From NCBI RefSeq assembly GCF_046119375.1, contig NW_027362767.1, positions 23,002,001 to 23,066,000 on the forward strand: a DNA stretch of 64,000 nucleotides, read 5' to 3'. This stretch comes from Phyllobates terribilis (taxonomy: Eukaryota). A program made the position numbers and the translations under genes. Shown piece after piece: positions 6,001-64,000 of this stretch (position 1 is its first letter; every line of letters starts with the position of its first letter). Under the pieces are notes generated by a model. The model was given only the letters and a program-made list of their open reading frames with translations. It made no database searches and was not told where the DNA came from.

Positions 6001-9000
6001 TATGTACACAGTGACTGCACCAGCAGAATAGTGAGTGCAGCTCTGGAGTATAATACAGGATGTAACTCAGAATCAGTAATGTAATGTATGTACACAGTGA
6101 CTGCACCAGCAGAATAGTGAGTGCAGCTCTGGAGTATAATACAGGATATAACTCAGGATCAGTAATGTAATGTATGTACACAGTGACTGCACCAGCAGAA
6201 TAGTGAGTGCAGCTCTGGGGTATAATACAGGAGGTAACTCAGGATCAGTAATATAATGTATGTACACAATGACTGCACCAGCAGAATAGTGAGTGCAGCT
6301 CTGGAGTATAATGCAGGATGTAACTCAGGATCAGTAATGTAATGTATGTACACAATGACTGCACCAGCAGAATAGTGAGTGCAGCTCTGGAGTATAATGC
6401 AGGATGTAACTCAGGATCAGTAATGTATGTACACAGTGACTCCACCAGCAGAATAGTGAGTGCAGCTCTGGAGTATAATACAGGATGTAACTCAGAATCA
6501 GTAATGTAATATATGTACACAGTGACTGCACCAGCAGAATAGTGAGTGCAGCTCTGGAGTATAATACAGGATATAACTCAGGATCAGTAATGTAATGTAT
6601 GTACACAGTGACTGCACCAGCAGAATAGTGAGTGCAGCTCTGGGGTATAATACAGGAGGTAACTCAGGATCAGTAATGTAATGTATGTACACAATGACTG
6701 CACCAGCAGAATAGTGAGTGCAGCTCTGGAGTATAATGCAGGATGTAACTCAGGATCAGTAATGTAATGTATGTACACAGTGACTGCACCAGCAGAATAG
6801 TGAGTGCAGCTCTGGAGTATAATACAGGATATAACTCAGGATCAGTAATGTAATGCATGTACACAGTGACTGCACCAGCAGAATAGTGAGGGCAGCTCTG
6901 GAGTATAATACAGGATGTAACTCAGGATCAGTAATGTAATGAATGTACACAGTGACTGCACCAGCAGAATAGTGAGTGCAGCTCTGGAGTATAATATAGG
7001 ATATAACTCAGGATCAGTAATGTAATGTATGTACACAGTGACTGCACCAGCAGAATAGTGAGTGCAGCTCTGGGGTATAATACAGGAGGTAACTCAGGAT
7101 CAGTAATGTAATGTAATGTATGTACACAGTGACTGCACCAGCAGAATAGTGAGTGCAGCTCTGGAGTATAATGCAGGATGTAACTCAGGATCAGTAATGT
7201 AATGTATGTACACAGTGACTGCACCAGCAGAATAGTGAGCGCAGCTCTGGAGTATAATACAGGATGTAACTCAGGATCAGTAATGTAATGAATGTACACA
7301 GTGACTGCACCAGCAGAATAGTGAGTGCAGCTCTGGAGTATAGTACAGGATGTAACTCAGGATCAGTAATGTAATGTATGTACACAGTGACTGCACCAGC
7401 AGAATAGTGAGTGCAGCTCTGGGGTATAATACAGGAGGTAACTCAGGATCAGTAATGTAATGTAATGTATGTACACAGTGACTGCACCAGCAGAATAGTG
7501 AGTGCAGCTCTGGAGTATAATGCAGGATGTAACTCAGGATCAGTAATGTAATGTATGTACACAGTGACTGCACCAGCAGAATAGTGAGCGCAGCTCTGGA
7601 GTATAATACAGGATGTAACTCAGGATCAGTAATGTAATGAATGTACACAGTGACTGCACCAGCAGAATAGTGAGTGCAGCTCTGGAGTATAGTACAGGAT
7701 GTAACTCAGGATCAATAATGTAATGTATGTACACAGTGACTGCACCAGCAGAATAGTGAGCGCAGCTCTGGAGTATAATACAGGATGTAACTCAGGATCA
7801 GTAATGTAATGAATGTACCCAGTGACTGCACCAGCAGAATAGTGAGTGCAGCTCTGGAGTATAATACAGGATGTAACTCAGGATCAGTAATGTAATGTAT
7901 GTACACAGTGACTGCACCAGCAGAATAGTGAGCGCAGCTCTGGAGTATAATACAGGATGTAACTCAGGATCAGTAATGTAATGTATGTACACAGTGACTG
8001 CACCAGCAGAATAGTGAGTGCAGCTCTGGGGTATAATACAGGAGGTAACTCAGGATCAGTAATGTATGTACACAGTGACTGCACCAGCAGAATAGTGAGT
8101 GCAGCTCTGGAGTATAATACAGGATATAACTCAGGATCAGTAATGTAATGTATGTACACAGTGACTGCACCAGCAGAATAGTGAGTGCAGCTCTGGAGTA
8201 TAATACAGGATATAACTCAGGATCAGTAATGTAATGTATGTACACAGTGACTGCACCAGCAGAATAGTGAGTGCAGCTCTGGAGTATAATACAGGATATA
8301 ACTCAGGATCAGTAATGTAATGTATGTACATAGTGACTGCCCCAGCAGAATAGTGAGTGCAGCTCTGGAGTATAATACAGGGTGTAACTCAGGATCAATA
8401 ATGTAATGTATGTACACAGTGACTGCACCAGCAGAATAGTGAGTGCAGCTCTGGAGTATAATACAGGATGTAACTCAGGATCAGTAATGTAATGTATGTA
8501 CACAGTGACTGCACCAGCAGAATAGTGAGTGAAGCTCTGGAGTATAATACAGGATGTAACTCAGGATCAGTAATGTAATGTATGTACACAGTGACTGCAC
8601 CAGCAGAATAGTGAGTGCAGCTCTGGGGTATAATACAGGAGGTAAATCAGGATCAGTAATGTAATGTATGTACACAGTGACTGCACCAGCAGAATAGTGA
8701 GTGCAGCTCTGGAGTATAATACAGGATGTAAATCAGGATCAGTAATGTAATGTATGTACACAGTGACTGCACCAGCAGAATAGTGAGTGCAGCTCTGGAG
8801 TATAATACAGGATGTAACTCAGGATCAGTAATGTATGTACACAGTGACTGCACCAGCAGAATAGTGAGTGCAGCTCTGGGGTATAATACAGGAGGTAACT
8901 CAGGATCAGTAATGTAATGTATGTACACAGTGACGGCACCAGCAGAATAGTGAGTGCAGCTCTGGAGTATAATACAGGAAGTAATTCAGGATCAGTAATG

Positions 9001-12000
9001 TAATGTATGTACACAGTGACTGCACCAGCAGAATAGTTAGTGCAGCTCTGGAGTATAATACAGGATGTAACTCAGGATCAGTAATGTAATGTATGTGCAC
9101 AGTGACTCCACCAGCAGAATAGTGAGTGCAGCTCTAGAGTATAATACAGGATGTAACTCAGGATCAGTAATGTAATGTATGTACACAGTGACTGCACCAG
9201 CAGAATAGTGAGCGCAGCTCTGGAGTATAATACAGGATGTAACTCAGGATCAGTAATGTAATGTATGTACACAGTGACTGCACCAGCAGAATAGTGAGTG
9301 CAGCTCTGGAGTATAATACAGGATGTAACTCAGGATCAGTAATGTAATATATGTACACAGTGACTGTACCAGCAGAATAGTGAGTGCAGCTCTGGAGTAT
9401 AATACAGGATATAACTCAGGATCAGTAATGTAATGTATGTACACAGTGACTGCACCAGCAGAATAGTGAGTGCAGCTCTGGAGTATAATACAGGATGTAA
9501 CTCAGGATCAATAATGTAATGTATGTACACAGTGACTGCACCAGCAGAATAGTGAGTGAAGCTCTGGAGTATAATACAGGATGTAACTCAGGATCAGTAA
9601 TGTAATGTATGTACACAGTGACTGCACCAGCAGAATAGTGAGTGCAGCTCTGGAGTATAATACAGGATGTAACTCAGGATCAGTAATGTAATGTATGTAC
9701 ACAGTGACTGCACCAGCAGAATAGTGAGCGCAGCTCTGGAGTATAATACAGGATATAACTCAGGATCAGTAATGTAATGTATGTGCACAGTGACTGCACC
9801 AGCAGAATAGTGAGTGCAGCTCTGGAGTATAATACAGGATATAACTCAGGATCAGTAATGTAATGTATGTACACAGTGACTGCACCAGCAGAATAGTGAG
9901 TGCAGCTCTGGAGTATAATACAGGATGTAACTCAGGATCAGTAATGTAATGTATGCACACAGTGACTGCACCAGCAGAATAGTGAGTGCAGCTCTGGAGT
10001 ATAATACAGGATGTAACTCAGGATCAGTAATGTAATGTATGTACACAGTGACTGCACCAGCAGAATAGTGAGCGCAGCTCTGGAGTATAATACAGGATGT
10101 AACTCAGGATCAGTAATGTAATATATGTACACAGTGACTGTACCAGCAGAATAGTGAGTGCAGCTCTGGAGTATAATACAGGATATAACTCAGGATCAGT
10201 AATGTAATGTATGTACACAGTGACTGCACCAGCAGAATAGTGAGTGCAGCTCTAGAGTATAATACAGGATGTAACTCAGGATCAGTAATGTAATGTATGT
10301 ACACAGCGACTGCACCAGCAGAATAGTGAGCGCAGCTCTGGAGTATAATACAGGATGTAACTCAGGATCAGTAATGTAATGTATGTACACAGTGACTGCA
10401 CCAGCAGAATAGTGAGTGCAGCTCTGGAGTATAATGCAGGATGTAACTCAGGATCAGTATTGTAATGTATGTACACAGTGACTGCACCAGCAGAATAGTG
10501 AGTGCAGCTCTGGAGTATAATACAGGATATAACTCAGGATTAGTAATGTAATGTATGTACACAGTGACTGCACCAGCAGAATAGTGAGTGCAGCTCTGGG
10601 GTATAATACAGGATGTAACTCAGGATCAGTAATGTATGTACACAGTGACTGCATCAGCAGAATAGTGAGTGCAGCTCTGGAGTATAATACAGGATATAAC
10701 TCAGGATTAGTAATGTAATGTATGTACACAGTGACTGCACCAGCAGAATAGTGAGTGCAGCTCTGGGGTATAATACAGGAGGTAACTCAGGATCAGTAAT
10801 GTATGTACACAGTGACTGCATCAGCAGAATAGTGAGTGCAGCTCTGGAGTATAATACAGGATATATCTCAGGATCAGTAATGTAATGTATGTACACAGTG
10901 ACTGCACCAGCAGAATAGTGAGTGCAGCTCTGGAGTATAATGCAGGATGTAACTCAGGATCAGTATTGTAATGTATGTACACAGTGACTGCACCAGCAGA
11001 ATAGTGAGTGCAGCTCTGGAGTATAATACAGGATATAACTCAGGATTAGTAATGTAATGTATGTACACAGTGACTGCACCAGCAGAATAGTGAGTGCAGC
11101 TCTGGGGTATAATACAGGAGGTAACTCAGGATCAGTAATGTAATGTATGTACACAGTGACGGCACCAGCAGAATAGTGAGTGCAGCTCTGGAGTATAATA
11201 CAGGATGTAACTCAGGATCAGTAATGTAATGTATGTACACAGTGACTGCACCAGCAGAATAGTGAGTGCAGCTCTGGAGTGTAATACAGGATGTAACTCA
11301 GGATCAGTAATGTAATGTATATACACAGTGACTCCACCAGCAGAATAATGAGTGCAGCTCTGGAGCATAATACAGGATGTAACTCAGGATCAGTAATGTA
11401 ATGTATGTACACAGCGACTGCACCAGCAGAATAGTGAGTGCAGCTCTGGAGTATAATACAGGATGTAACTCGGGATCAGTAATGTAATGTATGTACACAG
11501 TGACTGCACCAGCAGAATAGTGAGTGCAGCTCTGGAGTGTAATACAGGATGTAACTCAGGATCAGTAATGTAATGTATGTACACCGTGACTGCACCAGCA
11601 GAATAGTGAGTGCAGCTCTGGAGTATAATACAGGATGTAACTCAGGATCAGTAATGTAATGTACACAGTGACTGCACCAGCAGAATAGTGAGTGCAGCTC
11701 TGGAGTATAATACAGGTTGTAACTCAGGATCAGTAATGTAATGTATATATACAGTGACTCCACCAGCAGAATAGTGAGTGCAGCTCTGGAGTATAATACA
11801 GGATGTAACTCAGGATCAGTAATGTAATGTATGTACACAGTGACTGCACCAGCAGAATAGTGAGTGCAGCTCTGGAGTATAATACAGGATGTAACTCAGG
11901 ATCAGTAATGTATGTACACAGTGACTGCACCAGCAGAATAGTGAGTGCAGCTCTGGAGGATAATACAGGAGGTAACTCAGGATCAGTAATGTAATGTATG

Positions 12001-12497
12001 TACACAGTGACTCCACCAGCAGAATAGTGACTGCAGCTCTGGAGTATAATACAGGATGTAACTCAGGATCAGTAATGTATGTACACAGTGATGGCACCAG
12101 CAGAATAGTGAGTGCAGCTCTGGAGTATAATACAGGATGTAACTCGGGATCAGTAATGTAATGTATGCACACTGTGACTGCACCAGCAGAATAGTGAGTG
12201 CAGCTCTGGAGTATAATACAGGATGTAACTCAGGATCAGTAATGTAATGTATGTACACAGTGACTGCACCAGCAGAATAGTGAGTGCAGCTCTGGAGTAT
12301 AATACAGCATGTAACTCAGGATCAGTAATGTAATATATGTACACAGTGACAGCACCAGCAGAATAGTGAGTGCAGCTCTGGAGTGTAATACAGGATGTAA
12401 CTCAGGATCAGTAATGTGATGTATATACACAGTGACTGCACCAGCAGAATAGTGAGTGCAGCTCTGGGGTATAATACAGGAAGTAACTCAGGATCAG
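1..12497 (-). repeat. 86-bp tandem satellite array (about 145 units, runs off the left edge)
   Basis: Unit on the minus strand is TACATACATTACATTACTGATCCTGAGTTACATCCTGTATTATACTCCAGAGCTGCACTCACTATTCTGCTGGTGCAGTCACTGTG. The 86-bp period is visible in the ORF spacing. 81-bp (one ACATT lost) and 91-bp variants are interspersed. Confidence 0.99.
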
Positions 12498-14705: not shown

Positions 14706-32652
<17,947 letters not shown>

Positions 32653-35490: not shown

Positions 35491-35770
35491 GCTTCAATTC
35501 CCAGAATGCCTTGCGAGCCTGCAATCAGGGCATGCTGGGTGTTGTAGTTCCTGCTCATGTCACTATGTTGCATTTGCTACTTTCCAGACTTTGCACTTGA
35601 TGACGTCACATGAAGTGGGCGGGGTGTAAGGAGGCGGATCACTTATTTAGGGCGGAGTTTGGGAGCTGCTGATTTTTGCAGGAAGAGGGAGCAGAGCTGA
35701 CATCATGGTTGGTGCAGGCTGGGGGACACGCACACTGTATCAGTTAGAGACTACAAGTCCCAGCATGTCA
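35491..35770 (+). promoter_or_regulatory. OTUB2 promoter and exon 1 region: ZNF143/THAP11-type motifs, CRE, GC boxes
   Basis: TTCCCAGAATGCCTTGCG (about 35498-35515), CATGCTGGGTGTTGTAGT (35531-35548), TGACGTCA (35601-35608), GGGCGGGG (35617), GGGCGGAG (35651), ACTACAAGTCCCAGCATG (35750-35767). Confidence 0.6.
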
Positions 35771-38700
35771 TGACATTTGTATGCAGGGAGTAGTGGTTTC
35801 CCAGCAGCCATGAGCTACAGGTTATATATTCTGCATTAATCATGGTGTGCTATTTTCCTCTGGTATCAGTCAGGGGCAGCGCTCATGCTGATTGGCTGCA
35901 GGGGCGGGGTCATTGTTACATAGTTTCTGATCTGTGAAGTGACAATGTTACTGTCAGTGAGGGCAGGGGTCACAGGGGCATCTCCGGGGTCACAGGGGCA
36001 TCTCCAGGGTCTGGGGGCATTATAGGATTATTCCTGAAAAATCCAGGTATTCCCAATCTATAGGATAGGTAATAATTTGCTGATCACTTGGGGTCTGACT
36101 GCTGGGACCCCCACAGACTCTTAGATGTAGCGGAGGGGTGTATGCTCGGCCTCCGCTCCAGTCATTGTCCATGGACTGCCATGTGCAGCAGCTTTTCCAT
36201 CAGTCCCATAGATAATGGATAGGAGGCTGAGCATACACCCCTCCTCAAAGCTGCACAGCCAAGTTCTCTGGATCTGTGGGGGTCCCAGCGGTCTGACCCC
36301 AGTGATCAGCAAGTTACCCCCTATCCAATAGTTGGGGAATACCGTGACTTTTTGTGACTGGCCCTTTAATGCCCCATTTGTGGAATTGCTGGGGTCCTCA
36401 GCTGTTGGACTCCCAACGATCAGCAGGTCCATCACCTGTAGATGGAGGATACCTTGATTTTTTTTTTTCCCTTTGGGGATTAACTCTTTAATGAGGTTTC
36501 CTAATTTGTATCTATGACCAGTATCACTAGGACCTATCCAGCGGTGTAACCTGTGGTTTACGGGGCCCAAATCTCCCACTGGGGCCCCAACACCCACGGG
36601 TCTATACTGGTCTTCTCATATGGGCCAAAGGGACGTTTTAGGTTCCCGGCGTTCCAATGCCAGCGACCCCTGAACCCACTGTAGTAACGCGCCTCGATAT
36701 ATCATTACTTGCTGATTGTAGGGGTAGTGAGGTAACTATAGCAGTCACACTTGTGACCCCCCCCCTGGTCTAGGGGACCCCATAGGCTAGAGGTGAGTGG
36801 CGGCTTCAAGGCGAAGTGTCAGCTCTAGGGGTGAGCGGAGGATTCGGGGAGAGGCGTCAGCTCTAGGGGTGAGCGGAGGATTCGGGGAGAAGCGTCGGCT
36901 CTAGGGGTGAGCGGAGGATTCGGGGAGAAGCGCCAGCTCTAGGGGTGAGCGGAGGATTCGGGGAGAAGCGCCAGCTCTAGGGGTGAGCGGAGGATTCGGG
37001 GAGAAGCGCCAGCTCTAGGGGTGAGCGGAGGATTCGGGGAGAAGCGCCAGCTCTAGGGGTGAGCGGAGGATTCGGGGAGAAGCGCCAGCTCTAGGGGTGA
37101 GCGGAGGATTCGGGGAGAAGCGCCAGCTCTAGGGGTGAGCGGAGGATTCGGGGAGAAGCGCCAGCTCTAGGGGTGAGCGGAGGATTCGGGGAGAAGCGCC
37201 AGCTCTAGGGGTGAGCGGAGGATTCGGGGAGAAGCGCCAGCTCTAGGGGTGAGCGGAGGATTCGGGGAGAAGCGCCAGCTCTAGGGGTGAGCGGAGGATT
37301 CGGGGAGAAGCGCCAGCTCTAGGGGTGAGCGGAGGCTGCAGGATGGTGGGGGCCATGTTAAAGTTTAGTACAGGTAACCGGACCCGGCGCTTTCTAGTGA
37401 CCCGGCGCTTTCTAGTGACCCGGCGCTTTCTAGTGACCCGGCGCTTTCTAGTGACCCGGCGCTTTCTAGTGACCCGGCGCTTTCTAGTGACCCCTGATAG
37501 GCATCTAACATGCTGTGGCTCCGCCAGTGATGTGCAGGTGTCAGATTCAGAGAATAGACTCAGCTGCGCCCTCTTGTGGGGTCCCAGCATCACTCAAGGG
37601 TTAGTAAAAAATCTCTGGTTGGGCAGGCGGAGCGCCTCCATCCACAGGCACAGACTCTGCATGCATAGATTGCCCCCTGGTGGTGCAAAGTTAAAAAAAT
37701 GAAAAAAAAAAAAAAAAAACAAGATGCAGATGACCCCTTTAAACTCGCTGCTTCAGTCATGATAGAATCTAATATTGTGAGATTTGTTATAACTTTACGG
37801 TCCTGATTCATTATTTGCGGTTTTTTTCTTTACTTTTCCTTTTTATCTGATATTTATTGACCTTTTTTTGTGCCAAATTCTTCAGAATGACTAAGGGGGG
37901 GCTAATGGATTTTGTGCAAAATAGAGATGTCCCGTGGTTTTTTTAAAAATATTTTTTGTGCCATTTTACAGCAGAGTCGCACAATTCTTCAATATTCTGC
38001 CCGTTAGTCTAAACCAGGGTTCCCCAACTCCAGTCCTCAAGGCCCACCAACAGGTCATGTTTTCAGGATTTCCTTAGTATTACACAGGTGATGGAATTAT
38101 TGCCTGTGCAGGTGATGCAATTATCACCTGTGCAATACTAAGGAAATCCTGAAAACATGACCTGTTGGTGGGCCTTGAGGACTGGAGTTGGGGAACCCTG
38201 GTCTAAACGATGCAAAAATATAATGAAGCGGCTGTAGAGCTGCAGCAGGGACCGAGGCGAGAACTGCACAGAGTGTGCAACACTAGAAAAGAAACATCTT
38301 CATAATGAAACCGCGGCCATGAGGGCGTTATAACCAGAAAATGTCACAACTATGATTGCTGGCTGTGTCTCTCTGGCTCTCGCTCCCCCGCGCTCTCTCC
38401 CTCTCTGTGTGGCGGGCGCTCTCTCCCTCTCCCTCTCTGTGGCGGGCGCTCCCCCGCGCTCTCGCTCTCTCCCTCTCTGTGGCGGGCGCTCCCCCGCGCT
38501 CTCGCTCTCTCCCTCTCTGTGGCGGGCGCTCCCCCGCGCTCTCGCTCTCTCCCTCTCTGTGGCGGGCGCTCCCCCGCGCTCTCACTCTCTCTCTCTCTGT
38601 GGCGGGGCCCCCGCTGTCAGTGAATGTACTTTGTGTGTTTCAGGCCGCGGGGGGTTTGATCTCGGAGAAGTGCGATCTCGCCGTCTTCATAGAGGGGCAC

Positions 38701-41445
38701 TGCGCCGAGCCGTTGTGTCGACAGAGGTTGAAGGTGCTTATTTTTAACCCTTCTTTGGCGCTGCTGTTTGGATGATTGTTAATAAGCACAAAACTTTTAA
38801 AACGAATGGATTAGGGGGTGCGGGTTATATGTGTCTCCCTGGGAGTTGTAGTCCCCCTGCAGCTCGGCCTGACTCCTATCTCCTCAGGGGCTGCAGGGAC
38901 GTTACGGTGCCGTCCGCCGGGCCTGCCCTGACGGCAGCTGCTTCTATAGAGGTTTGGCCTTCGCTTTCCTGGAGTATCTGCTCGGTAAACCCCAGGACTT
39001 GCTCCGGTGAGTGGACGCCATTAGTCGCTGACCACATGGATATTTCCAGGGTCCATCCTCAGCTCTTTGCTTTTCTTCGCAGGTTTAGAGAGCGGGTGAC
39101 ACAGAGTGGAAGGGATCTGCTCGCTGCCGGATTCCAGGATCATGTGTATAGACCTCACTATGAGACAGTAAGTCTGAGCCGTGGGGCAGGGGAGGGGGCA
39201 AATCTGATTGGCTTAGAGCTCACAGCACTGCTCTGACCTCAGAACAGAAAAGGACCTCCCACTTGGCAAACTTAGAGAGAAAAAATAAACATTTAAAGGG
39301 GTTGTCCTGAATTGAGGAAAAACTGCTTTCTTCCCAAAAAACAGCGCCACACCCATGCACAGGTCGTATTTGGTATTGCAGCTCAGTACTATTCACCTTA
39401 AAGGGAATCTGTCACCCCCTGGGCGATATCAGACCTCTAATATGGCATACAGGTGATAGAAAGGTAAATCTATACTTACCTGTATGGCCCATAGCAGAGC
39501 TCTGATTGCAGAGGGATCTGGTTTTATAAAGTCTATTTTCCAGAGGCTTGGGGGTCCGGGGGACAGGAAGAAATCCCCACCTATGTGCTTACTATTCCCC
39601 TAAATCGCTGCCTCTGTGCTAAGTTACCATATTGGCCCTGTGACGTGCCCTGCTCTGCCTCCCCTCCCGCGCATGCGCAGAGCACCGCTCCCCTGGAGCG
39701 CGCCTGGTTTCCCTCCGGTGAGTCAGTGACTCGCCGTCGCTTGTGCAATACAAGGCTGTGGCGCAGTACGCAGCCAAACGGGGCCGGAGGGAAACACAGC
39801 ACGCTCCAGGGGAGCGGTGCTCTGCGCATGCGCAGGAGGGGAGGCAGAGCAGGGCCTGTGACGTGCAGGGGAGGGGGGAATATGGTAATTTAGCACAGAG
39901 GCGGCGATTTAGGGGAATAGTAAGCACATAGGTGGGGATTTCTTCCTGTCCCCCAGACCCCCAAGCCTCTGGAAAACAGACTTTATAAAACCAGATTCCT
40001 CTGCAATCAGAGCTCTGCTATGGGCCATACAGGTAAGTATAGATTTACCTTTCTATCACCTGTATGCCCATAATAGAGGTCTGATATCGCCCAGGGGGGG
40101 TGACTCATTCCCTTTAATGGAGCTAGACTGCAATACCGCACACTGCCTGCAGACAGATGTGGCGCTGTGTTTAGAAGAAAGCTGCCACCTTTTTCTAATC
40201 CACTTCTAGAAAAGCCTGAGGATGGATAATGGCTTCATTTTTTTTTTTTTGTTACACTTTAATCATCGTGTAGTAAAAGATCTGATTCCTGTTAGGGATT
40301 GAAAACTTTTTACATAAAACCCAAGGGAGCTCTATCGGATGGGTTAGGGTGGGCATCTGCAGGCCGCTGGGAGCAGCAGTTTCAGGACAGGTGGAGCCAT
40401 CATGTGAAACTAACATTTACATATTTCCCCTTCAAGAACAGCAGGGGGCAGTATTGCAGGGAATGTTTGGCGCCTTGGACCCCTCCAACCCCGGATATTG
40501 CACCATTTTTCTAGATGTCCCACCTTCCCCCCCTGTGACTTGTGCTTGGATCTGAACTCTCCTAGTTTCTCAGCCTTGTAGATGTGGTAGCGGGCGAAGG
40601 GACAGCAGCAGGCGAAGCGGCAACGGGCGAGGGGACAACAGCAGGTGAAGCGGCAGCAAGGGTCAAGGCAACAGCCAGCAGCCTCCTGGGAGCGTTCAAC
40701 CATCCGTATGTCTCTGACAGCGTCGTCCGGTACCTGAGACTCGTCACTTCCGCCTTCCTCCGGAGCAGAGCTGAATTCTTCCAGCCGTTCTTAGAGTATG
40801 CCTGCAGCATGGAGGACTTCTGCACTCAGGTTCAGCCTCGTTACATGTATATGAGGGGGGGGGGGGGGGTCTTTTCAGATAGTAAAGGATTGGGCAGATG
40901 GATTACAATATGCTCAATCCTTTGTTCCTGAGGTGCCTGACTGCATCTCACGCCCCTCGTCCCACTAATGAGGCAATCTAATCCCGCTCATCCACCAGAT
41001 CTTTCACAATGGGGATCTCACGTGTGGACCCCTGACAGGTGCCGTTGTCAGTGAAGGTCCGAATCCCCTCCATACCTACAGCTCTCTGCAATGTGTGGGA
41101 ATCTGACCCCCCCCCGTGTCCACTGTCCACACCGCTACATGCCCGCTCGGCAGAAATGAGCATCCATGTGTGTACAGGAGCCGACCGCTTCCTTATACCG
41201 TAAACTCTGGTGTCTTCTCTTCCCTGCAGAGCGTGGAGCCCATGATGGCGGTGTGCGACCACATGCAGATCATGGCAGTGACGCAGGCGCTGGATATACC
41301 GCTGCAGGTGGAATACGTGGACTCCAGAGACATGGCCATAACCCAGCACGTCTTCCCGGAGGGGTCCTGCCCGTGCGTCTACATGCTGTACAGTGAGGAC
41401 CACTATACCCTGCTGTACAAGGAGGGAGCCGTCCCCCCTGTGTAG
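35705..41445 (+). CDS. OTUB2: Ubiquitin thioesterase OTUB2 (otubain-2), divergent, 258 aa, spliced
   Basis: Coding exons 35705-35707 (ATG only; inferred from CATC-ATG|GTTGGT), 38644-38733, 38888-39006, 39083-39167, 40566-40829, 41230-41445; total 777 nt. Motifs LISEKCD, DGSCFYR, DLLAAGF, LRLVTSAF, VEPM..CDH.QI and LQVEYVD match otubains. Short N-terminus and convergence with DDX24 indicate OTUB2 rather than OTUB1. Confidence 0.92.
36047..36341. mobile_element. Palindromic MITE remnant in OTUB2 intron 1
   Basis: GGTATTCCCAATCTATAGGATAGG...GCTGATCACT...GGGACCCCCACAGA is mirrored by TCTGTGGGGGTCCC...AGTGATCAGC...CCTATCC...GGGGAATACC. Termini are decayed. Confidence 0.65.
36819..37335. repeat. 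38-bp G-rich minisatellite (about 13.5 units)
   Basis: Unit CAGCTCTAGGGGTGAGCGGAGGATTCGGGGAGAAGCGC, near-identical copies. Confidence 0.97.
37381..37494. repeat. 18-bp minisatellite (about 6 units)
   Basis: Unit GACCCGGCGCTTTCTAGT. It explains the TRRFLV and TRKRRV repeat ORFs. Confidence 0.95.
38015..38200. mobile_element. hAT-family MITE, 186 bp, near-perfect palindrome
   Basis: Exact 8-bp target duplication GTCTAAAC at 38007-38014 and 38201-38208. TIRs CAGGGTTCCCCAACTCCAGTCCTCAAGG / CCTTGAGGACTGGAGTTGGGGAACCCTG. Confidence 0.95.
38372..38606. repeat. About 40-bp CT/CG-rich minisatellite just upstream of OTUB2 exon 2
   Basis: Unit CTCCCTCTCTGTGGCGGGCGCTCCCCCGCGCTCTCGCTCT, 5-6 copies. Confidence 0.92.
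39297..40210. mobile_element. Older T2/Kolobok-type MITE hosting a nested MITE at its central TTAA
   Basis: TTAA-AGGGGTTGTCC left end. Arms CAGCGCCAC...GGTATTGCAG and CTGCAATACC...GTGGCGCTG are inverted around the insert. The right end is decayed, so the end coordinate is approximate. Confidence 0.6.
39402..40113. mobile_element. T2/Kolobok-type MITE, 712 bp, long foldback, in OTUB2 intron 4
   Basis: TTAA duplication at 39398-39401 and 40114-40117. Termini AGGGAATCTGTCACCCCC / GGGGGTGACTCATTCCCT. Arms are complementary over most of their length. Confidence 0.93.
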
Positions 41446-41680
41446 GGGCCGTGGCCCAGGACTGATGCGGGGGTCCTACATCTGCAACCCCAGCCCCTAT
41501 AGATCTGGACACATAAGATGTGAAACTGTGACCACGAGTTACAATCTGCACCGCAATTTATTAACCCCTTAGGGTTCAGGTGTGGCTGTGGAGTGGGGCA
41601 GAAGGACGTCTGAGGGTCTCCACATGCGGGAGCGTGACTCATTAAGTTTGTAGGGGGCGTAACTGCACACAGGGAAAAGA

Positions 41681-41843: not shown

Positions 41844-54029
<12,186 letters not shown>

Positions 54030-55006: not shown

Positions 55007-58000
55007 TGTGTACATACATTACATTACTGAGCCTGTATTATACCCCAGAGCTGCACTCACTATTCTGGTGCAGTCACTGTGCACACACATTACATTACTG
55101 ATCCTGAGTTACATCCTGTATTATACTCCAGAGCTGCACTCACTATTCTGCTGGTGCAGTCACTGTGTACATACATTACATTACTGATCCTGAGTTACAT
55201 CCTGCATTATACTCCGGAGCTGCACTCACTATTCTGCTGGTGCAGTCACTGTGTACATACATTACATTACTGATCCTGAGTTACATCCTGTATTATACTC
55301 CGGAGCTGCACTCACTATTCTGCTGGTGCAGTCACTGTGTACATATATTACATTACTGATCCTGAGTTACATCCTGTATTATACCCCAGAGCTGCACTCA
55401 CTATTCTGCTGGTGCAGTCACTGTGTTCATACATTACATTACTGATCCTGAGTTACATCGTGTATTATACCCCAGAGCTGCACTCACTATTCTGCTGGTG
55501 CAGTCACTGTGTACATACATTACATTACTGATCCTGAGTTACCTCCTGTATTATACCCCAGAGCTGCACTCACTATTCTGCTGGTGCAGTCACTGTGTAA
55601 TTACATTACATTACTGATCCTGAGTTACATCCTGTATTATACTCCAGAGCAGCACTCACTATTCTGCTGGTGCAGTCACTGTGTACATACATTACATTAC
55701 TGATCCTGAGTTACCTCCTGTATTATACTCCAGAGCTGCACTCACTATTCTGCTGGTGCAGTCACTGTGTACATACATTACATTACTGATCCTGAGTTAT
55801 ATCTTGTATTATACTCCAGAGCTGCACTCACTATTCTGCTGGTGCAGTCACTGTGTACATACATTACATTACTGATCCTGAGTTACATCCTGCATTATAC
55901 TCCGGAGCTGCACTCACTATTCTGCTGGTGCAGTCACTGTGTACATACATTACATTACTGATCCTGAGTTACATCCTGTATTATACTCCGGAGCTGCACT
56001 CACTATTCTGCTGGTGCAGTCACTGTGTACATATATTACATTACTGATCCTGAGTTACATCCTGTATTATACCCCAGAGCTGCACTCACTATTCTGCTGG
56101 TGCAGTCACTGTGTTCATACATTACATTACTGATCCTGAGTTACATCGTGTATTATACCCCAGAGCTGCACTCACTATTCTGCTGGTGCAGTCACTGTGT
56201 ACATACATTACATTACTGATCCTGAGTTACCTCCTGTATTATACCCCAGAGCTGCACTCACTATTCTGCTGGTGCAGTCACTGTGTAATTACATTACATT
56301 ACTGATCCTGAGTTACATCCTGTATTATACTCCAGAGCAGCACTCACTATTCTGCTGGTGCAGTCACTGTGTGCATACATTACATTACTGATCCTGAGTT
56401 ATATCCTGTATTATACTCCAGAGCGGCACTCACTATTCTGCTGGTGCAGTCACTGTGTACATACATTACATTACTGATCCTGAGTTACATCCGGTATTAT
56501 ACTCCAGAGCAGCACTCACTATTCTGCTGGTGCAGTCACTGTGTACATACATTACATTACTGATCCTGAGTTACATCCTGTATTATCCTCCAGAGCTGCA
56601 CTCACTAAACTGCTGGTGCAGTCACTGTGTACATACATTACATTACTGATCCTGAGTTACATCCAGTATTATACTCCAGAGCTGCACTCACTATTCTGCT
56701 GGTGCAGTCACTGTGTACATACATTACATTACTGATCATGAGTTACCTCCTGTATTATACTCCAAAGCTGCACTCACTATTCTGCTGGTGCAGTCACTGT
56801 GTACATACATTACATTACTGATCCAGAGTTACATCCTGTATTATACTCCAGAGCTGCACTCACTATTCTGCTGGTGCAGTCACTGTGTACATACATTACT
56901 GATCCTGAGTTATATCCTGTATTATACTCCAGAGCTGCACTCACTATTCTGCTGGTGCAGTCACTGTGTACATACATTACATTACTGATCCTGAGTTACA
57001 TCCGGTATTATACTCCAGAGCAGCACTCACTATTCTGCTGGTGCAGTCACTGTGTACATACATTACATTACTGATCCTGAGTTACATCCTGTATTATCCT
57101 CCAGAGCTGCACTCACTAATCTGCTGGTGCAGTCACTGTGTACATACATTACATTACTGATCCTGAGTTACATCCAGCATTATACTCCAAAGCTGCACTC
57201 ACTATTCTGCTGGTGCAGTCACTGTGTACATACATTACATTACTGATCCAGAGTTACATCCTGTATTATACTCCAGAGCTGCACTCACTATTCTGCTGGT
57301 GCAGTCACTGTGTAAATACATTACATTACTGATCCTGAGTTGCCTCCTGTATTATACTCCAGAGCTGCACTCACTATTCTGCTGGTGCAGTCACTGTGTA
57401 CATACATTACATTACTGATCATGAGTTACATCCTGTATTATACTCCAGAGCTGCACTCACTATTCTGCTGGTACAGTCACTGTGTACATACATTACATTA
57501 CTGACCCTGAGTTACATCCTGTATTATACTCCAGAGCTGCACTCACTATTCTGCTGGTGAAGTCACTGTGTACATACACTACATTACTGATCCTGAGTTA
57601 CATCCTGTATTATACTCCAGAGCTGCACTCACTATTCTGCTGGTGCAGTCACTGTGTACATACATTACATTACTGATCCTGAGTTACATCCTGTATTATA
57701 CTCCAGAGCTGCACTCAGTATTCTGCTGGTGCAGTCACTGTGTACATACATTACATTACTGATCCTGAGTCACCTCCTGTATTATACTCCAGAGCTGCAC
57801 TCACCATTCTGCTGGTACTGTCAATGTGTACATACATTACATTACTGATCCTGAGTTACCTCCTGTATTACACTCCAGAGCTGCACTCACTATTCTGCTG
57901 GTGCAGTCACTGTGTACATACATTACATTACTGATCCTGAGTTACATCCTGTATTATACTCCAGAGCTGCACTCACTATTCTGCTGGTGCAGTCACTGAG

Positions 58001-61000
58001 TGCATACATTACATTACTGATCCTGAGTTACATCCTGTATTATACTCCAGAGCTGCACTCACTATTCTGCAAGGTGCAGTCACTGTGTACATACATTACA
58101 TTACTGATCCTGAGTTACATCCTGTATTATACTCCAGAGCTGCACTCACTATTCTGCTGGTGCAGTCACTGTGTACATACATTACATTACTGATCCTGAG
58201 TTACATCCTGTATTATACTCCAGAGCTGCACTCACTATTCTGCTGGTGCAGTCACTGCATACATACATTACATTACTGATCCTGAGTTACATCCTGTATT
58301 ATACTCCAGAGCTGCACTCACTATTCTGCAAGATGCAGTCACTGTGTACATACATTACATTACTGATCCTGAGTTACATCCTGTATTACACCCCAGAGCT
58401 GCACTCACTATTCTGCTGGTGCAGTCACTGTGTACAAACATTACATTACTGATCCTGTACTGATCCGGAGTTACCTACTGTATTATACTCCAGAGCTGCA
58501 CTCACTATTCTGCTGGTGCAGTCACTGTGTACAAACATTACATTACTGATCCTGTACTGATCCGGAGTTACCTCCTGTATTATACTCCAGAGCTGCACTC
58601 ACTATTCTGCTGGTGCAGTCACTGTGTACATACATTACATTACTGATCCTGAGTTACCTCCTGTATTATACTCCAGAGCTGCACTCACTATTCTCCTCGT
58701 GCAGTCACTGTGTACATACATTACATTACTGATCCTGAGTTACATCCTGTATTATACTCCAGAGCTGCACTCACTATTCTGCTGGTGCAGTCACTGTGTA
58801 CATACATTACATTACTGATCCTGAGTTACATCCTGTATTATACTCCAGAGCTGCACTCACTATTCTGCTGGTGCAGTCACTGTGTACATACATTACATTA
58901 CTGATCCTGAGTTACATCCTGTATTATACTCCAGAGCTGCGCTCACTATTCTGCTGGTGCAGTCACTGTGTACATATATTACATTACTGATCCTGAGTTA
59001 CCTCCTCTATTATACTCCAGAGCTGCACTCACTATTCTGCTGGTGCAGTCACTGTGTACATACATTACTGATCCTGAGTTACATCCTGTATTATACTCCA
59101 GAGCTGCACTCACTATTCTGCTGGTGCAGTCACTGTATACATACATTACATTACTGATCCTGAGTTACATCCTGTATTATACTCCAGAGCAGCTCTCACT
59201 ATTCTGCTGGTGCAGTCACTGTGTACATATATTACATTACTGATCCTGAGTTACATCCTGTATTATACTCCAGAGCTGCACTCACTATTCTGCTGGTGCA
59301 GTCACTGTGTACATACATTACTGATCCTGAGTTACATCCTGTATTATACTCCAGAGCTGCACTCACTATTCTGCTGGTGCAGTCACTATGTACATACATT
59401 ACATTACTGATCCTGAGTTACATCCTGTATTATACTCCAGAGCTGCACTCACTATTCTGCTGGTGCAGTCACTGTGTACATACATTACATTACTGATCCG
59501 GAGTTACATCCGGTATTATACTCCAGAGCTGCTCTCACTATTCTGCTGGTGCAGTCACTGTGTACATACATTACATTACTGATCCTGAGTTACATCCTGT
59601 ATTATACTCCAGAGCTGCTCTCACTATTCTGCTGGTGCAGTCACTGTGTACATACATTACATTACTGATCCTGAGTTATAGCCTGTATTATACTCCAGAG
59701 CTGCACTCACTATTCTGCTGGTGCAATCACTGTGTACATACATTACATTACTGATCCTGAGTTACATCCTGTATTATACTCCAGAGCTGCACTCACTATT
59801 CTGCTGGTGGAGTCACTGTGTACATACATTACATTATTGATCCTGAGTTACATCCTGTATTATACCCCAGAGCTGTAACTCACTATTCTGCTGGTGCAGT
59901 CACTGTGTACATACATTACATTACTGATCCTGAGTTACATCCTGTATTATACTCCGGAGCTGCACTCACTATTCTGCTGGTGCAGTCACTGTGTACATAT
60001 ATTACATTACTGATCCTGAGTTACTTCCTCTATTATACTCCAGAGCTGCACTCACTATTCTGCTGGTGCAGTCACTGTGTACATACATTACTGATCCTGA
60101 GTTACATCCTGTATTATACTCCAGAGCTGCACTCACTATTCTGCTGGTGCAGACACTGTGTACATACATTACATTACTGATCCTGAGTTACATCCTGTAT
60201 TATACTCCAGAGCTGCACTCACTATTCTGCTGGTGCAGACACTGTGTACATACATTACATTACTGATCCTGAGTTACATCCTGTATTATACTCCAGAGCT
60301 GCACTCACTATTCTGCTGGTGCAGTCACTGTGTACATATATTACATTACTGATCCTGAGTTACCTCCTCTATTATACTCCAGAGCTGCACTCACTATTCT
60401 GCTGGTGCAGTCACTGTGTACATACATTACTGATCCTGAGTTACATCCTGTATTATACCCCAGAGCTGCACTCACTATTCTGCTGGTGCAGTCACTGTGT
60501 ACATACATTACATTACTGATCCTGAGTTACATCCTGTATTATACTCCAGAGCTGCACTCACTATTCTGCTGGTGCAGTCACTGCATACATACATTACATT
60601 ACTGATCCTGAGTTACATCCTGTATTATACTCCAGAGCTGCACTCACTATTCTGCAAGGTGCAGTCACTGTGTACATACATTACATTACTGATCCTGAGT
60701 TACATCCTGTATTATACTACAGAGCTGCACTCACTATTCTGCTGGTGCAGTCACTGTGTACATACATTACATCACTGATCCTGAGTTACATCCTGTATTA
60801 CACCCCAGAGCTGCACTCACTATTCTGCTGGTGCAGTCACTGTGTACATACATTACATTACTGATCCTGAGTTACATCCTGTATTATACTCCAGAGCTGC
60901 ACTCACTATTCTGCTGGTGCAGTCACTGTGTACAAACATTACATTACTGATCCTGTACTGATCCGGAGTTACCTCCTGTATTATACTCCAGAGCTGCACT

Positions 61001-64000
61001 CACTATTCTGCTGGTGCAGTCACTGTGTACAAACATTACATTACTGATCCTGTACTGATCCGGAGTTACCTCCTGTATTATACTCCAGAGCTGCACTCAC
61101 TATTCTGCTGGTGCAGTCACTGTGTACATACATTACATTACTGATCCTGAGTTACCTCCTGTATTATACTCCAGAGCTGCACTCACTATTCTCCTGGTGC
61201 AGTCACTGTGTACATACATTACATTACTGATCCTGAGTTACATCCTGTATTATACTCCAGAGCTGCACTCACTATTCTGCTGGTGCAGTCACTGTGTACA
61301 TACATTACATTACTGATCCTGAGTTACATCCTGTATTATACTCCAGAGCTGCACTCACTATTCTGCTGGTGCAGTCACTGTGTACATACATTACTGATCC
61401 TGAGTTACATTCTGTATTATACTCCAGAGCTGCACTCACTATTCTGCTGGTGCAGTCACTGTGTACATACATTACATTACTGATCCTGAGTTACATCCTG
61501 TATTATACTCCAGAGCTGCGCTCACTATTCTGCTGGTGCAGTCACTGTGTACATATATTACATTACTGATCCTGAGTTACCTCCTCTATTATACTCCAGA
61601 GCTGCACTCACTATTCTGCTGGTGCAGTCACTGTGTACATACATTACATTACTGATCCTGAGTTACATCCTGTATTATACTCCAGAGCTGCGCTCACTAT
61701 TCTGCTGGTGCAGTCACTGTGTACATATATTACATTACTGATCCTGAGTTACCTCCTCTATTATACTCCAGAGCTGCACTCACTATTCTGCTGGTGCAGT
61801 CACTGTGTACATACATTACTGATCCTGAGTTACATCCTGTATTATACTCCAGAGCTGCACTCACTATTCTGCTGGTGCAGTCACTGTGTACATACATTAC
61901 ATTACTGATCCTGAGTTACATCCTGTATTATATTCCAGAGCAGCACTCACTATTCTGCTGGTGCAGTCACTATGTACATACATTACATTACTGATCCTGA
62001 GTTACATCCTGTATTATACTCCAGAGCTGCACTCACTATTCTGCTGGTGCAGTCACTGTGTACATACATTACATTACTGATCCGGAGTTACATCCGGTAT
62101 TATACTCCAGAGCTGCTCTCACTATTCTGCTGGTGCAGTCACTGTGTACATACATTACATTACTGATCCTGAGTTACATCCTGTATTATACTCCAGAGCT
62201 GCTCTCACTATTCTGCTGGTGCAGTCACTGTGTACATACATTACATTACTGATCCTGAGTTATAGCCTGTATTATACTCCAGAGCTGCACTCACTATTCT
62301 GCTGGTGCAATCACTGTGTACATACATTACATTACTGATCCTGAGTTACATCCTGTATTATACTCCAGAGCTGCACTCACTATTCTGCTGGTGGAGTCAC
62401 TGTGTACATACATTACATTATTGATCCTGAGTTACATCCTGTATTATACCCCAGAGCTGCACTCACTATTCTGCTGGTGCAGTCACTGTGTACATACATT
62501 ACATTACTGATCCTGAGTTACATCCTGTATTATACTCCGGAGCTGCACTCACTATTCTGCTGGTGCAGTCACTGTGTACATATATTACATTACTGATCCT
62601 GAGTTACTTCCTCTATTATACTCCAGAGCTGCACTCACTATTCTGCTGGTGCAGTCACTGTGTACATACATTACTGATCCTGAGTTACATCCTGTATTAT
62701 ACTCCAGAGCTGCACTCACTATTCTGCTGGTGCAGACACTGTGTACATACATTACATTACTGATCCTGAGTTACATCCTGTATTATACTCCAGAGCTGCA
62801 CTCACTATTCTGCTGGTGCAGACACTGTGTACATACATTACATTACTGATCCTGAGTTACATCCTGTATTATACTCCAGAGCTGCACTCACTATTCTGCT
62901 GGTGCAGTCACTGTGTACATATATTACATTACTGATCCTGAGTTACCTCCTCTATTATACTCCAGAGCTGCACTCACTATTCTGCTGGTGCAGTCACTGT
63001 GTACATACATTACTGATCCTGAGTTACATCCTGTATTATACCCCAGAGCTGCACTCACTATTCTGCTGGTGCAGTCACTGTGTACATACATTACATTACT
63101 GATCCTGAGTTACATCCTGTATTATACTCCAGAGCTGCACTCACTATTCTGCTGGTGCAGTCACTGCATACATACATTACATTACTGATCCTGAGTTACA
63201 TCCTGTATTATACTCCAGAGCTGCACTCACTATTCTGCAAGGTGCAGTCACTGTGTACATACATTACATTACTGATCCTGAGTTACATCCTGTATTATAC
63301 TACAGAGCTGCACTCACTATTCTGCTGGTGCAGTCACTGTGTACATACATTACATTACTGATCCTGAGTTACATCCTGTATTACACCCCAGAGCTGCACT
63401 CACTATTCTGCTGGTGCAGTCACTGTGTACATACATTACATTACTGATCCTGAGTTACATCCTGTATTATACTCCAGAGCTGCACTCACTATTCTGCTGG
63501 TGCAGTCACTGTGTACAAACATTACATTACTGATCCTGTACTGATCCGGAGTTACCTCCTGTATTATACTCCAGAGCTGCACTCACTATTCTGCTGGTGC
63601 AGTCACTGTGTACAAACATTACATTACTGATCCTGTACTGATCCGGAGTTACCTCCTGTATTATACTCCAGAGCTGCACTCACTATTCTGCTGGTGCAGT
63701 CACTATGTACAAACATTACATTACTGATCCTGTACTGATCCGGAGTTACCTCCTGTATTATACTCCAGAGCTGCACTCACTATTCTGCTGGTGCAGTCAC
63801 TGTGTACATACATTACATTACTGATCCTGAGTTACCTCCTGTATTATACTCCAGAGCTGCACTCACTATTCTCCTGGTGCAGTCACTGTGTACATACATT
63901 ACATTACTGATCCTGAGTTACATCCTGTATTATACTCCAGAGCTGCACTCACTATTCTGCTGGTGCAGTCACTGTGTACATACATTACATTACTGATCCT
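55007..64000 (+). repeat. 86-bp satellite array (over 100 units, runs off the right edge)
   Basis: Same unit, inverted relative to 1-12497. Contains 81-bp units and 97-bp units with an ACTGATCCTGT duplication. Confidence 0.99.

Follow-up and report, generated by a model that had tools for sequence, protein, structure and literature searches.

The gene for otubain-2 (OTUB2, peptidase family C65) of the dendrobatid frog Phyllobates terribilis was analysed in a window of 64,000 nucleotides (contig NW_027362767.1 of assembly GCF_046119375.1, positions 23,002,001 to 23,066,000 of the forward strand), from whose first nucleotide all coordinates below are counted. The gene consists of six exons on the + strand, from the ATG at 35705-35707 to the stop codon at 41443-41445, with a product of 258 amino acids, and is the single orthologue of otubain-2 in this species. 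Several residues at or near its active site differ from those considered canonical for otubains, and most likely these changes arose one after another, deep in frog ancestry, and were retained under selection. The protein is read here, with a probability of about 0.65, as a thiol deubiquitinase predicted to work through its Cys and His, the third catalytic residue being weak or absent and the cleft changed, and not as a decaying enzyme. As the gene is already annotated as OTUB2, it is not new in itself.

Active-site residues of P. terribilis OTUB2

The loop carrying the catalytic Cys reads CPDGSC and is preceded by Ala43 (38921-38923) one residue upstream; it includes Pro45 (CCT, 38927-38929), Asp46, Gly47, Ser48 (AGC, 38936-38938) and Cys49 (TGC, 38939-38941). 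The MAVCDH motif contributes Val195 (GTG, 41251-41253) and the DHYT motif contributes His245 (CAC, 41401-41403), Tyr246 and Thr247 (ACC, 41407-41409). An earlier note, made from the DNA sequence alone, had described the gene as an OTUB2 with a remodelled active site, and every residue and coordinate on which that description relied (Cys49, Ser48, Pro45, Val195, His245 and Thr247) was found in the sequence. The motifs it quoted for the human proteins were confirmed: in HMMER alignments to chains of the PDB, OTUB2 shows KTKGDGNCFYR, ATECDH and SHYNILY, and sequences of the paralogous otubain OTUB1 show RPDGNCFYR, ESDH and GHYDILY. Its identification of the gene was likewise correct, as was the absence of the canonical Asn/Asp third residue, of the Asn before the Cys and of the Glu of the ECDH motif.

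Compared with human OTUB2 (PDB 1tff, 4fjv and 8cms), to which the P. terribilis protein could be aligned exon by exon and with which it shares the C65 otubain fold, the frog protein retains the Cys and the His as well as the CDH motif and the Asp-Gly of the Cys loop, and neither protein has the long N-terminal extension of OTUB1. The differences are Asn50 to Ser48, Asn226 to Thr247, Glu174 to Val195, Gly47 to Pro45 and Thr45 to Ala43 (human residue first), along with an insert of about 24 residues, predicted to be disordered, at the site of the human loop EKDGS. Of the features that define an otubain, the catalytic Cys within D-G-x-C-F-Y-R and the catalytic His within H-Y-x-x-L-Y are present (Cys49 and His245), whereas the Asn/Asp expected two positions past the His is replaced by Thr247. 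The Pro before the Asp is found in OTUB1 too (RPDGNC), but OTUB1 differs from the frog protein in its third-residue Asp, its ESDH motif and its N-terminal ubiquitin-binding extension.

Distribution of the residues across frogs and other vertebrates

A search with P. terribilis OTUB2 returned OTUB2 of about 20 species of frog and of two caecilians, and another with caecilian OTUB2 added salamanders, mammals, a lungfish, sharks, ray-finned fishes and OTUB1 sequences. The residue before the catalytic Cys was Ser in 22/22 anuran OTUB2, including Ascaphus, Bombina, Xenopus and Hymenochirus, and Asn in every other vertebrate OTUB1 or OTUB2 sampled, salamanders and caecilians included. The third residue of the triad was Asn in Ascaphus, Bombina and the pipids, whereas Spea, Pelodytes and all the Neobatrachia sampled (acosmanuran frogs) had one of three others: Spea and most Neobatrachia carried Thr, Pelodytes, Mixophyes and Pseudophryne carried Ser, and the African bullfrog Pyxicephalus carried Ala. 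The Glu of the E(C/S)DH motif was replaced by Val, or by Leu in Leptodactylus, in all the Neobatrachia sampled, and was present in older frog lineages and, wherever the motif was readable, in the other vertebrate otubains sampled. The residue before the Asp was Pro in P. terribilis and, independently, in Aquarana, Ser in Mixophyes and Ala in most other frogs; outside frogs it was Gly in OTUB2 and Pro in OTUB1.

The residues before the Cys, in the E(C/S)DH motif and at the third position of the triad therefore combine as Ser/Glu/Asn in Ascaphus, Bombina and Xenopus, as Ser/Glu/Thr or Ser/Glu/Ser in Spea and Pelodytes, and as Ser/Val/Thr in Neobatrachia, the last combination being shared by P. 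terribilis with Dendrobates tinctorius, Ranitomeya imitator, Bufo bufo, Engystomops and Nanorana. Around these changes, D46, G47, C49, F50, R52, D197, H198 and H245 were invariant in 21 amphibian sequences, the start of the CF.R helix and the (C/S)DH motif were invariant or nearly so across frogs, and both the catalytic Cys and the catalytic His, the loss of either of which would mark a pseudo-deubiquitinase, were kept in 22/22 frog sequences.

Outside frogs, Asn occupied the third position in mammals, salamanders, one caecilian and some teleosts, and Asp did so in sharks, gar, sturgeon, eels and all OTUB1, while a lungfish (Protopterus) had Glu and the caecilian Rhinatrema had Ser; this position of OTUB2 varies across vertebrates more than is usually stated. 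As a separate observation, no bird or reptile OTUB2 was among the 120 best of 262 matches to caecilian OTUB2, in which alligator OTUB1 did appear, and this sauropsid gap among the matches listed may reflect either the number of matches considered or a real absence.

In a maximum-likelihood tree, anuran OTUB2 formed one clade (100/99) that contained a neobatrachian subclade (100/99), so the simplest history is a series of single old events. Under this history, the Ser before the catalytic Cys would have arisen from Asn on the common stem of all frogs, the Thr or Ser at the third position from Asn in a shared ancestor of Neobatrachia and spadefoot-type frogs, and the Val of the ECDH motif from Glu on the neobatrachian stem; the replacement of Gly or Ala by Pro45, that of Thr by Ala43 and an 11-residue duplication in a loop would belong to the Phyllobates lineage only. 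By estimate, the Ser would then date back roughly 200 million years, and the Thr and the Val some 150 million years or longer. No discussion of amphibian OTUB2 or its active site was found in the literature searched and, as far as checked, this stepwise frog-wide replacement has apparently not been described before.

The earlier note implied a remodelling particular to this gene, a view that does not hold for Ser48, Val195 and Thr247, which are common to many frog families. The same note had allowed that these residues might prove widespread in amphibian OTUB2, which is largely what was found (DGSC in all the anurans, H-Y-T/S/A in Spea, Pelodytes and the Neobatrachia sampled, and V/L-CDH in the latter). 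Its suggestion of an altered activity or linkage preference is plausible from the residues involved, but would then concern a frog-wide property.

A recent adaptation or decay of the active site specific to Phyllobates is nevertheless the reading that would be favoured by those features in which this genus stands apart. Among dendrobatids, Pro45 and Ala43, the latter the counterpart of human Thr45, occur only in Phyllobates, and a 33-nt duplication adds 11 residues to a loop insert that is common to all three dendrobatids and was seen in dendrobatids only, the duplication itself being absent from Dendrobates and Ranitomeya. Against such a reading stand the wide distribution of the three residues just mentioned, the Pro of Aquarana and the variability of the Thr45 position in other frogs and in fish. 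Furthermore, at 56 columns, each conserved in at least 15/16 non-anuran OTUB2, P. terribilis showed 8 departures, compared to 2 to 10 in other frogs and 0 to 3 in non-frogs; therefore, P. terribilis is a typical frog in this respect. A recent remodelling of the site restricted to Phyllobates is thus very improbable, and the alignment of amphibian OTUB2 largely rules it out. Apart from the active site, P. terribilis OTUB2 is 77-78% identical to the other dendrobatid OTUB2 proteins and ends in ...AVPPV, whereas those of Dendrobates and Ranitomeya run 7 residues further, so the stop codon at 41443-41445 represents a lineage-specific shortening of the C-terminal tail.

Selection and rate of evolution

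Codon analyses were carried out on five hyloids (P. terribilis, R. imitator, D. tinctorius, Engystomops and Eleutherodactylus), with coding sequences obtained by exact spliced mapping. Pairwise ratios of nonsynonymous to synonymous substitution rates (dN/dS, or omega) among the three dendrobatids were 0.23-0.33 at dS 0.22-0.39, and those of the other hyloid pairs were 0.14-0.26. The Goldman-Yang model in IQ-TREE gave an omega of 0.287 for the dendrobatid trio (twice the log-likelihood difference to omega = 1, 46.6; p ~9e-12) and of 0.255 for the five hyloids (p ~2e-31). On the Phyllobates branch, which in this method includes the stem of the sister pair, 18 nonsynonymous and 20 synonymous codon changes were counted, compared to a neutral expectation of 77% nonsynonymous (binomial p = 9e-5). 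Purifying selection on OTUB2 is therefore clear, if moderate, and the gene is not drifting. The drift toward a pseudo-enzyme that the earlier note had considered finds no support in these values, with neutrality rejected in both sets and the Cys, the His and the core invariant in frogs; pseudogene-like drift is rejected in view of an omega well below 1 together with the invariant Cys, His and core motif.

At the protein level, frog OTUB2 nevertheless evolves fast: path lengths from the tetrapod node of the tree were about 0.25-0.35 for mammals, salamanders, caecilians and Ascaphus, 0.72 for Xenopus, 0.90 for Bufo and 1.05-1.17 for dendrobatids. A rough distance-based estimate from the pairwise values put omega on the long dendrobatid stem at ~0.16-0.17, which does not suggest any burst of relaxed or positive selection there. 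Tip branches, on an unresolved fork of the three species, measured 0.17 in P. terribilis, 0.07 in Dendrobates and 0.043 in Ranitomeya. That the first is the longest could again favour a change specific to Phyllobates, but the omega of this lineage is ~0.3 and its synonymous branch is proportionally longer.

Transcript and read support

Contigs from runs of three studies (X7, X9 and X17) were compared with positions 35600-41550. They skip exactly five GT..AG introns (35707>38644, 38733>38888, 39006>39083, 39167>40566 and 40829>41230), revealing that the gene is transcribed and correctly spliced. The X7 and X9 contigs had zero differences from the window in the coding sequence, and those of X17, a run labelled as another organism, had two, of which the one at 39134 is synonymous and the one at 40678 changes Ser to Asn in the insert region. 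None of the three sets differed by a letter at the active-site codons, and all of them contained the 33-nt duplication without indels. In addition, DNA run X15, from a different sample, spans 41266-41550 without any difference.

The unusual codons are therefore not assembly errors, since RNA contigs of three studies and a DNA run of a second sample agree with the window. The earlier note had left room for such errors, and none appeared at the active-site codons in reads or transcripts. Moreover, independent genome assemblies of about 20 frog species carry these active-site states, so that an assembly or annotation error as the source of the residues is hardly conceivable and is ruled out by the frog alignment and the reads.

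Family, fold and orthology

Exons 3, 5 and 6 each matched the Peptidase_C65 profile (PF10275) with 37-58 bits, compared to a cut-off of 24.3, and the same profile is precomputed for the NCBI OTUB2 protein of P. terribilis. For each of these exons, human OTUB2 was the best match in a sequence search of the PDB and OTUB1 the second. An AlphaFold model built with an alignment of 21 amphibian sequences had a mean predicted local distance difference test score (pLDDT) of 86.6 and a predicted template modelling score (pTM) of 0.85, and it shows the otubain fold. Its top Foldseek match was 4fjv_A, from the complex of human OTUB2 with ubiquitin (target template modelling score, TMt, 0.95; root mean square deviation 2.0; 43% identity), OTUB1 matches had TMt values of 0.95-0.97, and FAM105A, which has the ovarian tumour (OTU) fold, was also among the structural neighbours. 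The only long stretch of low confidence was at about residues 109-135 (pLDDT ~50), which corresponds to the Ala/Gly/Glu/Thr-rich insert between two helices.

In the tree, the frog protein fell within the clade of tetrapod OTUB2, with the OTUB1 sequences apart (100/100). PDB scores, tree placement and gene neighbourhood agree in assigning the gene to OTUB2 and not to OTUB1. The gene upstream, on the same strand, encodes a protein with DUF4200, and the one downstream, on the opposite strand, encodes a DEAD/Helicase_C protein of about 810 amino acids. The neighbours are the same in Ranitomeya and Dendrobates, the DEAD-box helicase gene being downstream on the opposite strand in the three dendrobatids, and the exon structure of OTUB2 in these two genera is also as in P. 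terribilis.

Proposed mechanism

The catalytic residues of human OTUB2 are Cys51, His224, Asn226 and Thr45 (PMC4295869). Asn226 orients His224 (PMC8926145), and Thr45 takes part in the His224-Asn226 hydrogen-bond network (PMC4295869; PMC8926145). Backbone NH groups from Asp48, Gly49, Asn50 and Cys51 make up the oxyanion hole of OTUB2, and Glu174 lines the active-site cleft, where it bonds to ligands (PMC10510154). As the hole is built from backbone NH groups, the change of Asn to Ser need not disturb it.

In the frog protein, Cys49 would attack the isopeptide bond with His245 acting as the base, and the oxyanion hole would be retained, formed by backbone NH groups of the Asp-Gly-X-Cys loop. 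His245 may be oriented weakly by the hydroxyl of Thr247, or not at all, in which case the site would effectively be a dyad. With a weak or absent third residue and without the carboxylate of the cleft Glu, activity or chain preference would probably be lowered or retuned, not abolished, in frogs generally. Compared with mammalian OTUB2, the differences would probably concern rate, regulation or the preferred linkage. A comparable arrangement is known from PRO/DUB of turnip yellow mosaic virus, a protein of OTU fold in which Ser replaces the third catalytic Asp and which has a Cys-His dyad and weak deubiquitinase activity (PMC3744425). Its Ser is a hydroxyl residue at the third position, like the Thr or Ser of frogs, but as PRO/DUB is a distant, minimal viral OTU protein without an oxyanion hole, the likeness is mechanistic and not one of close homology.

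Several observations weigh against a working enzyme. An omega of ~0.26-0.29 indicates moderate, not strong, constraint, and the distance of frog OTUB2 from the tetrapod node is 3 to 4.7 times that of the proteins of mammals, salamanders, caecilians and Ascaphus, which suggests that constraint on it is looser than elsewhere. The Ala of Pyxicephalus means that no hydrogen-bonding side chain is required at the third position in frogs, which fits a non-catalytic role too. In human OTUB2, the change of Asn226 to Ala is reported in a review to lower activity (PMC8926145).

The rate of protein evolution and the effect of the Asn226 change are also compatible with frog OTUB2 being a pseudo-deubiquitinase or scaffold, in which the fold and the binding of ubiquitin or a partner are selected and useful catalysis has been lost. 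Parallels would be the non-catalytic inhibition of E2 enzymes by OTUB1 and the inactive OTU protein FAM105A, the latter being one of the structural neighbours of the model. In the same direction point the tolerance of the third position for Thr, Ser and Ala in frogs and the fact that, at four positions within or adjacent to the active site, frogs depart from states that elsewhere in vertebrates are either invariant or confined to Asn, Asp and Glu. However, not only Cys49 and His245 but also Asp46, Gly47 and the start of the CF.R helix are invariant in 22/22 frogs, over an estimated span of roughly 200 million years, and a purely scaffold role is not expected to hold both catalytic residues everywhere; moreover, the oxyanion hole would be unaffected by the Asn to Ser change. 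A scaffold without useful catalysis is consequently considered unlikely, and a catalytically competent OTUB2 with a weak or absent third residue remains the preferred reading.

A bolder form of the latter, doubtful at present, is that all neobatrachian OTUB2 work without a classical third residue and with a hydrophobic residue in place of the cleft Glu, being genuine Cys-His dyads or else recruiting a side chain of the substrate or of ubiquitin to orient the His. The second option would resemble OTULIN, which organises its triad with a ubiquitin Glu (PMC4765238), namely Glu16.

Gene structure and annotation

The exons of OTUB2 and the duplication within exon 5 are listed in Table 1.

Table 1. 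Features of the OTUB2 gene in the window and the evidence for each
Feature	Position	Strand	Evidence
Exon 1, 3' part (5' untranslated region and ATG 35705-35707)	35650..35707	+	GT donor at 35708; joint 35707>38644 in transcript contigs
Exon 2, residues 2-31 (AAGGLISEKCDL...RQRLK)	38644..38733	+	Sequence, exact spliced mapping, transcript joints
Exon 3, Cys loop	38888..39006	+	Pfam Peptidase_C65, 3.1e-09; aligns to human OTUB2 residues 37-73
Exon 4, residues 72-99 (first base completes the Arg71 codon)	39083..39167	+	Spliced mapping, transcript joints
Exon 5, residues 100-187, Ala/Gly/Glu/Thr-rich loop insert	40566..40829	+	Pfam C65, 1.1e-12
33-nt tandem duplication inside exon 5	40591..40655	+	Tandem Repeats Finder, 2.0 copies, 90% matches
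Exon 6, coding part and stop TAG 41443-41445	41230..41445	+	Human OTUB2 residues 168-230, E 1.7e-20; Pfam C65, 1.6e-15

Exons 2-6 (38644 to 41442) encode 257 amino acids, with AG/GT boundaries and compatible phases throughout. No in-frame ATG was found in the contiguous sequence upstream of exon 2, and the initiator Met is supplied by the upstream exon, which ends in the ATG, is followed by the GT donor and falls outside the coordinates given in the earlier note. The intact gene of 258 amino acids described in the earlier note is thus correct if this Met is counted, whereas the five downstream exons alone fall one residue short of it. A word search seeded with the stop-free frame around exon 4 retrieved the NCBI protein 'ubiquitin thioesterase OTUB2 [Phyllobates terribilis]', whose 258 amino acids are Met plus exactly the 257 of exons 2-6. 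It is encoded at a locus of GCA_046119375.1 that matches the window without a difference over 25,741 bases, and the start of the gene maps to 35705. In Ranitomeya and Dendrobates, the annotation gives OTUB2 alternative first exons, through which the isoforms X1 gain about 20-25 amino acids at the N-terminus, whereas the first exon of P. terribilis contributes the Met only.

Repeats in and around the gene

Tandem Repeats Finder detected an 86-bp satellite in large arrays at both ends of the window, 1-12497 and 55032-64000 (146 and 104 copies, 94% matches), which are oppositely oriented and hence produce a mirrored GC skew of +0.22 and -0.22. The same satellite also forms smaller blocks within the territory of the neighbouring genes, at 24761-27676, 29305-29708 and 49121-49750. 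A 45-bp satellite (14945-22052, 158 copies, 93% matches) occupies the region of the upstream DUF4200 gene, presumably an intron. Two further arrays, one with a 36-bp unit (57 copies) and one of 31/61 bp, at 46715-48869 and 43155-43560, fall in the territory of the DEAD-box helicase gene that lies downstream on the minus strand.

Intron 1 of OTUB2 carries tandem arrays of 38 bp (14 copies, 36787-37335), 18 bp (6 copies, 37381-37493) and 40 bp (5 copies, 38416-38606), the last ending about 40 bases before the acceptor of exon 2; these arrays yield long stop-free, non-coding reading frames. Hairpin-like inverted repeats were also found in the introns, at 38007-38208 and 39444-40068, one with 86-nt arms of 97% complementarity and a 30-nt loop, the other with 195-nt arms of 96% and a nested 79-nt pair. 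As contig depth over them reached ~190,000 in DNA and RNA runs, they represent high-copy elements resembling miniature inverted-repeat transposable elements.

Significance

The P. terribilis gene alone is of little weight, being an ordinary annotated orthologue with inherited odd residues. The frog-wide pattern, in contrast, amounts to a small natural experiment on the OTU active site, in which three residues were replaced in succession under purifying selection while the Cys and the His were kept. In nearly all other vertebrate OTUB2 sampled, these three are fixed or confined to Asn, Asp or Glu. Living frogs preserve the intermediate states, which bear on the share of the third residue and of the cleft Glu in the activity and linkage choice of OTUB2. 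If neobatrachian OTUB2 did work as a dyad or with a recruited side chain, its linkage preference or regulation would differ from that of mammalian OTUB2 across several thousand species, and Xenopus (Ser/Glu/Asn) and Spea (Ser/Glu/Thr) would be natural intermediates.

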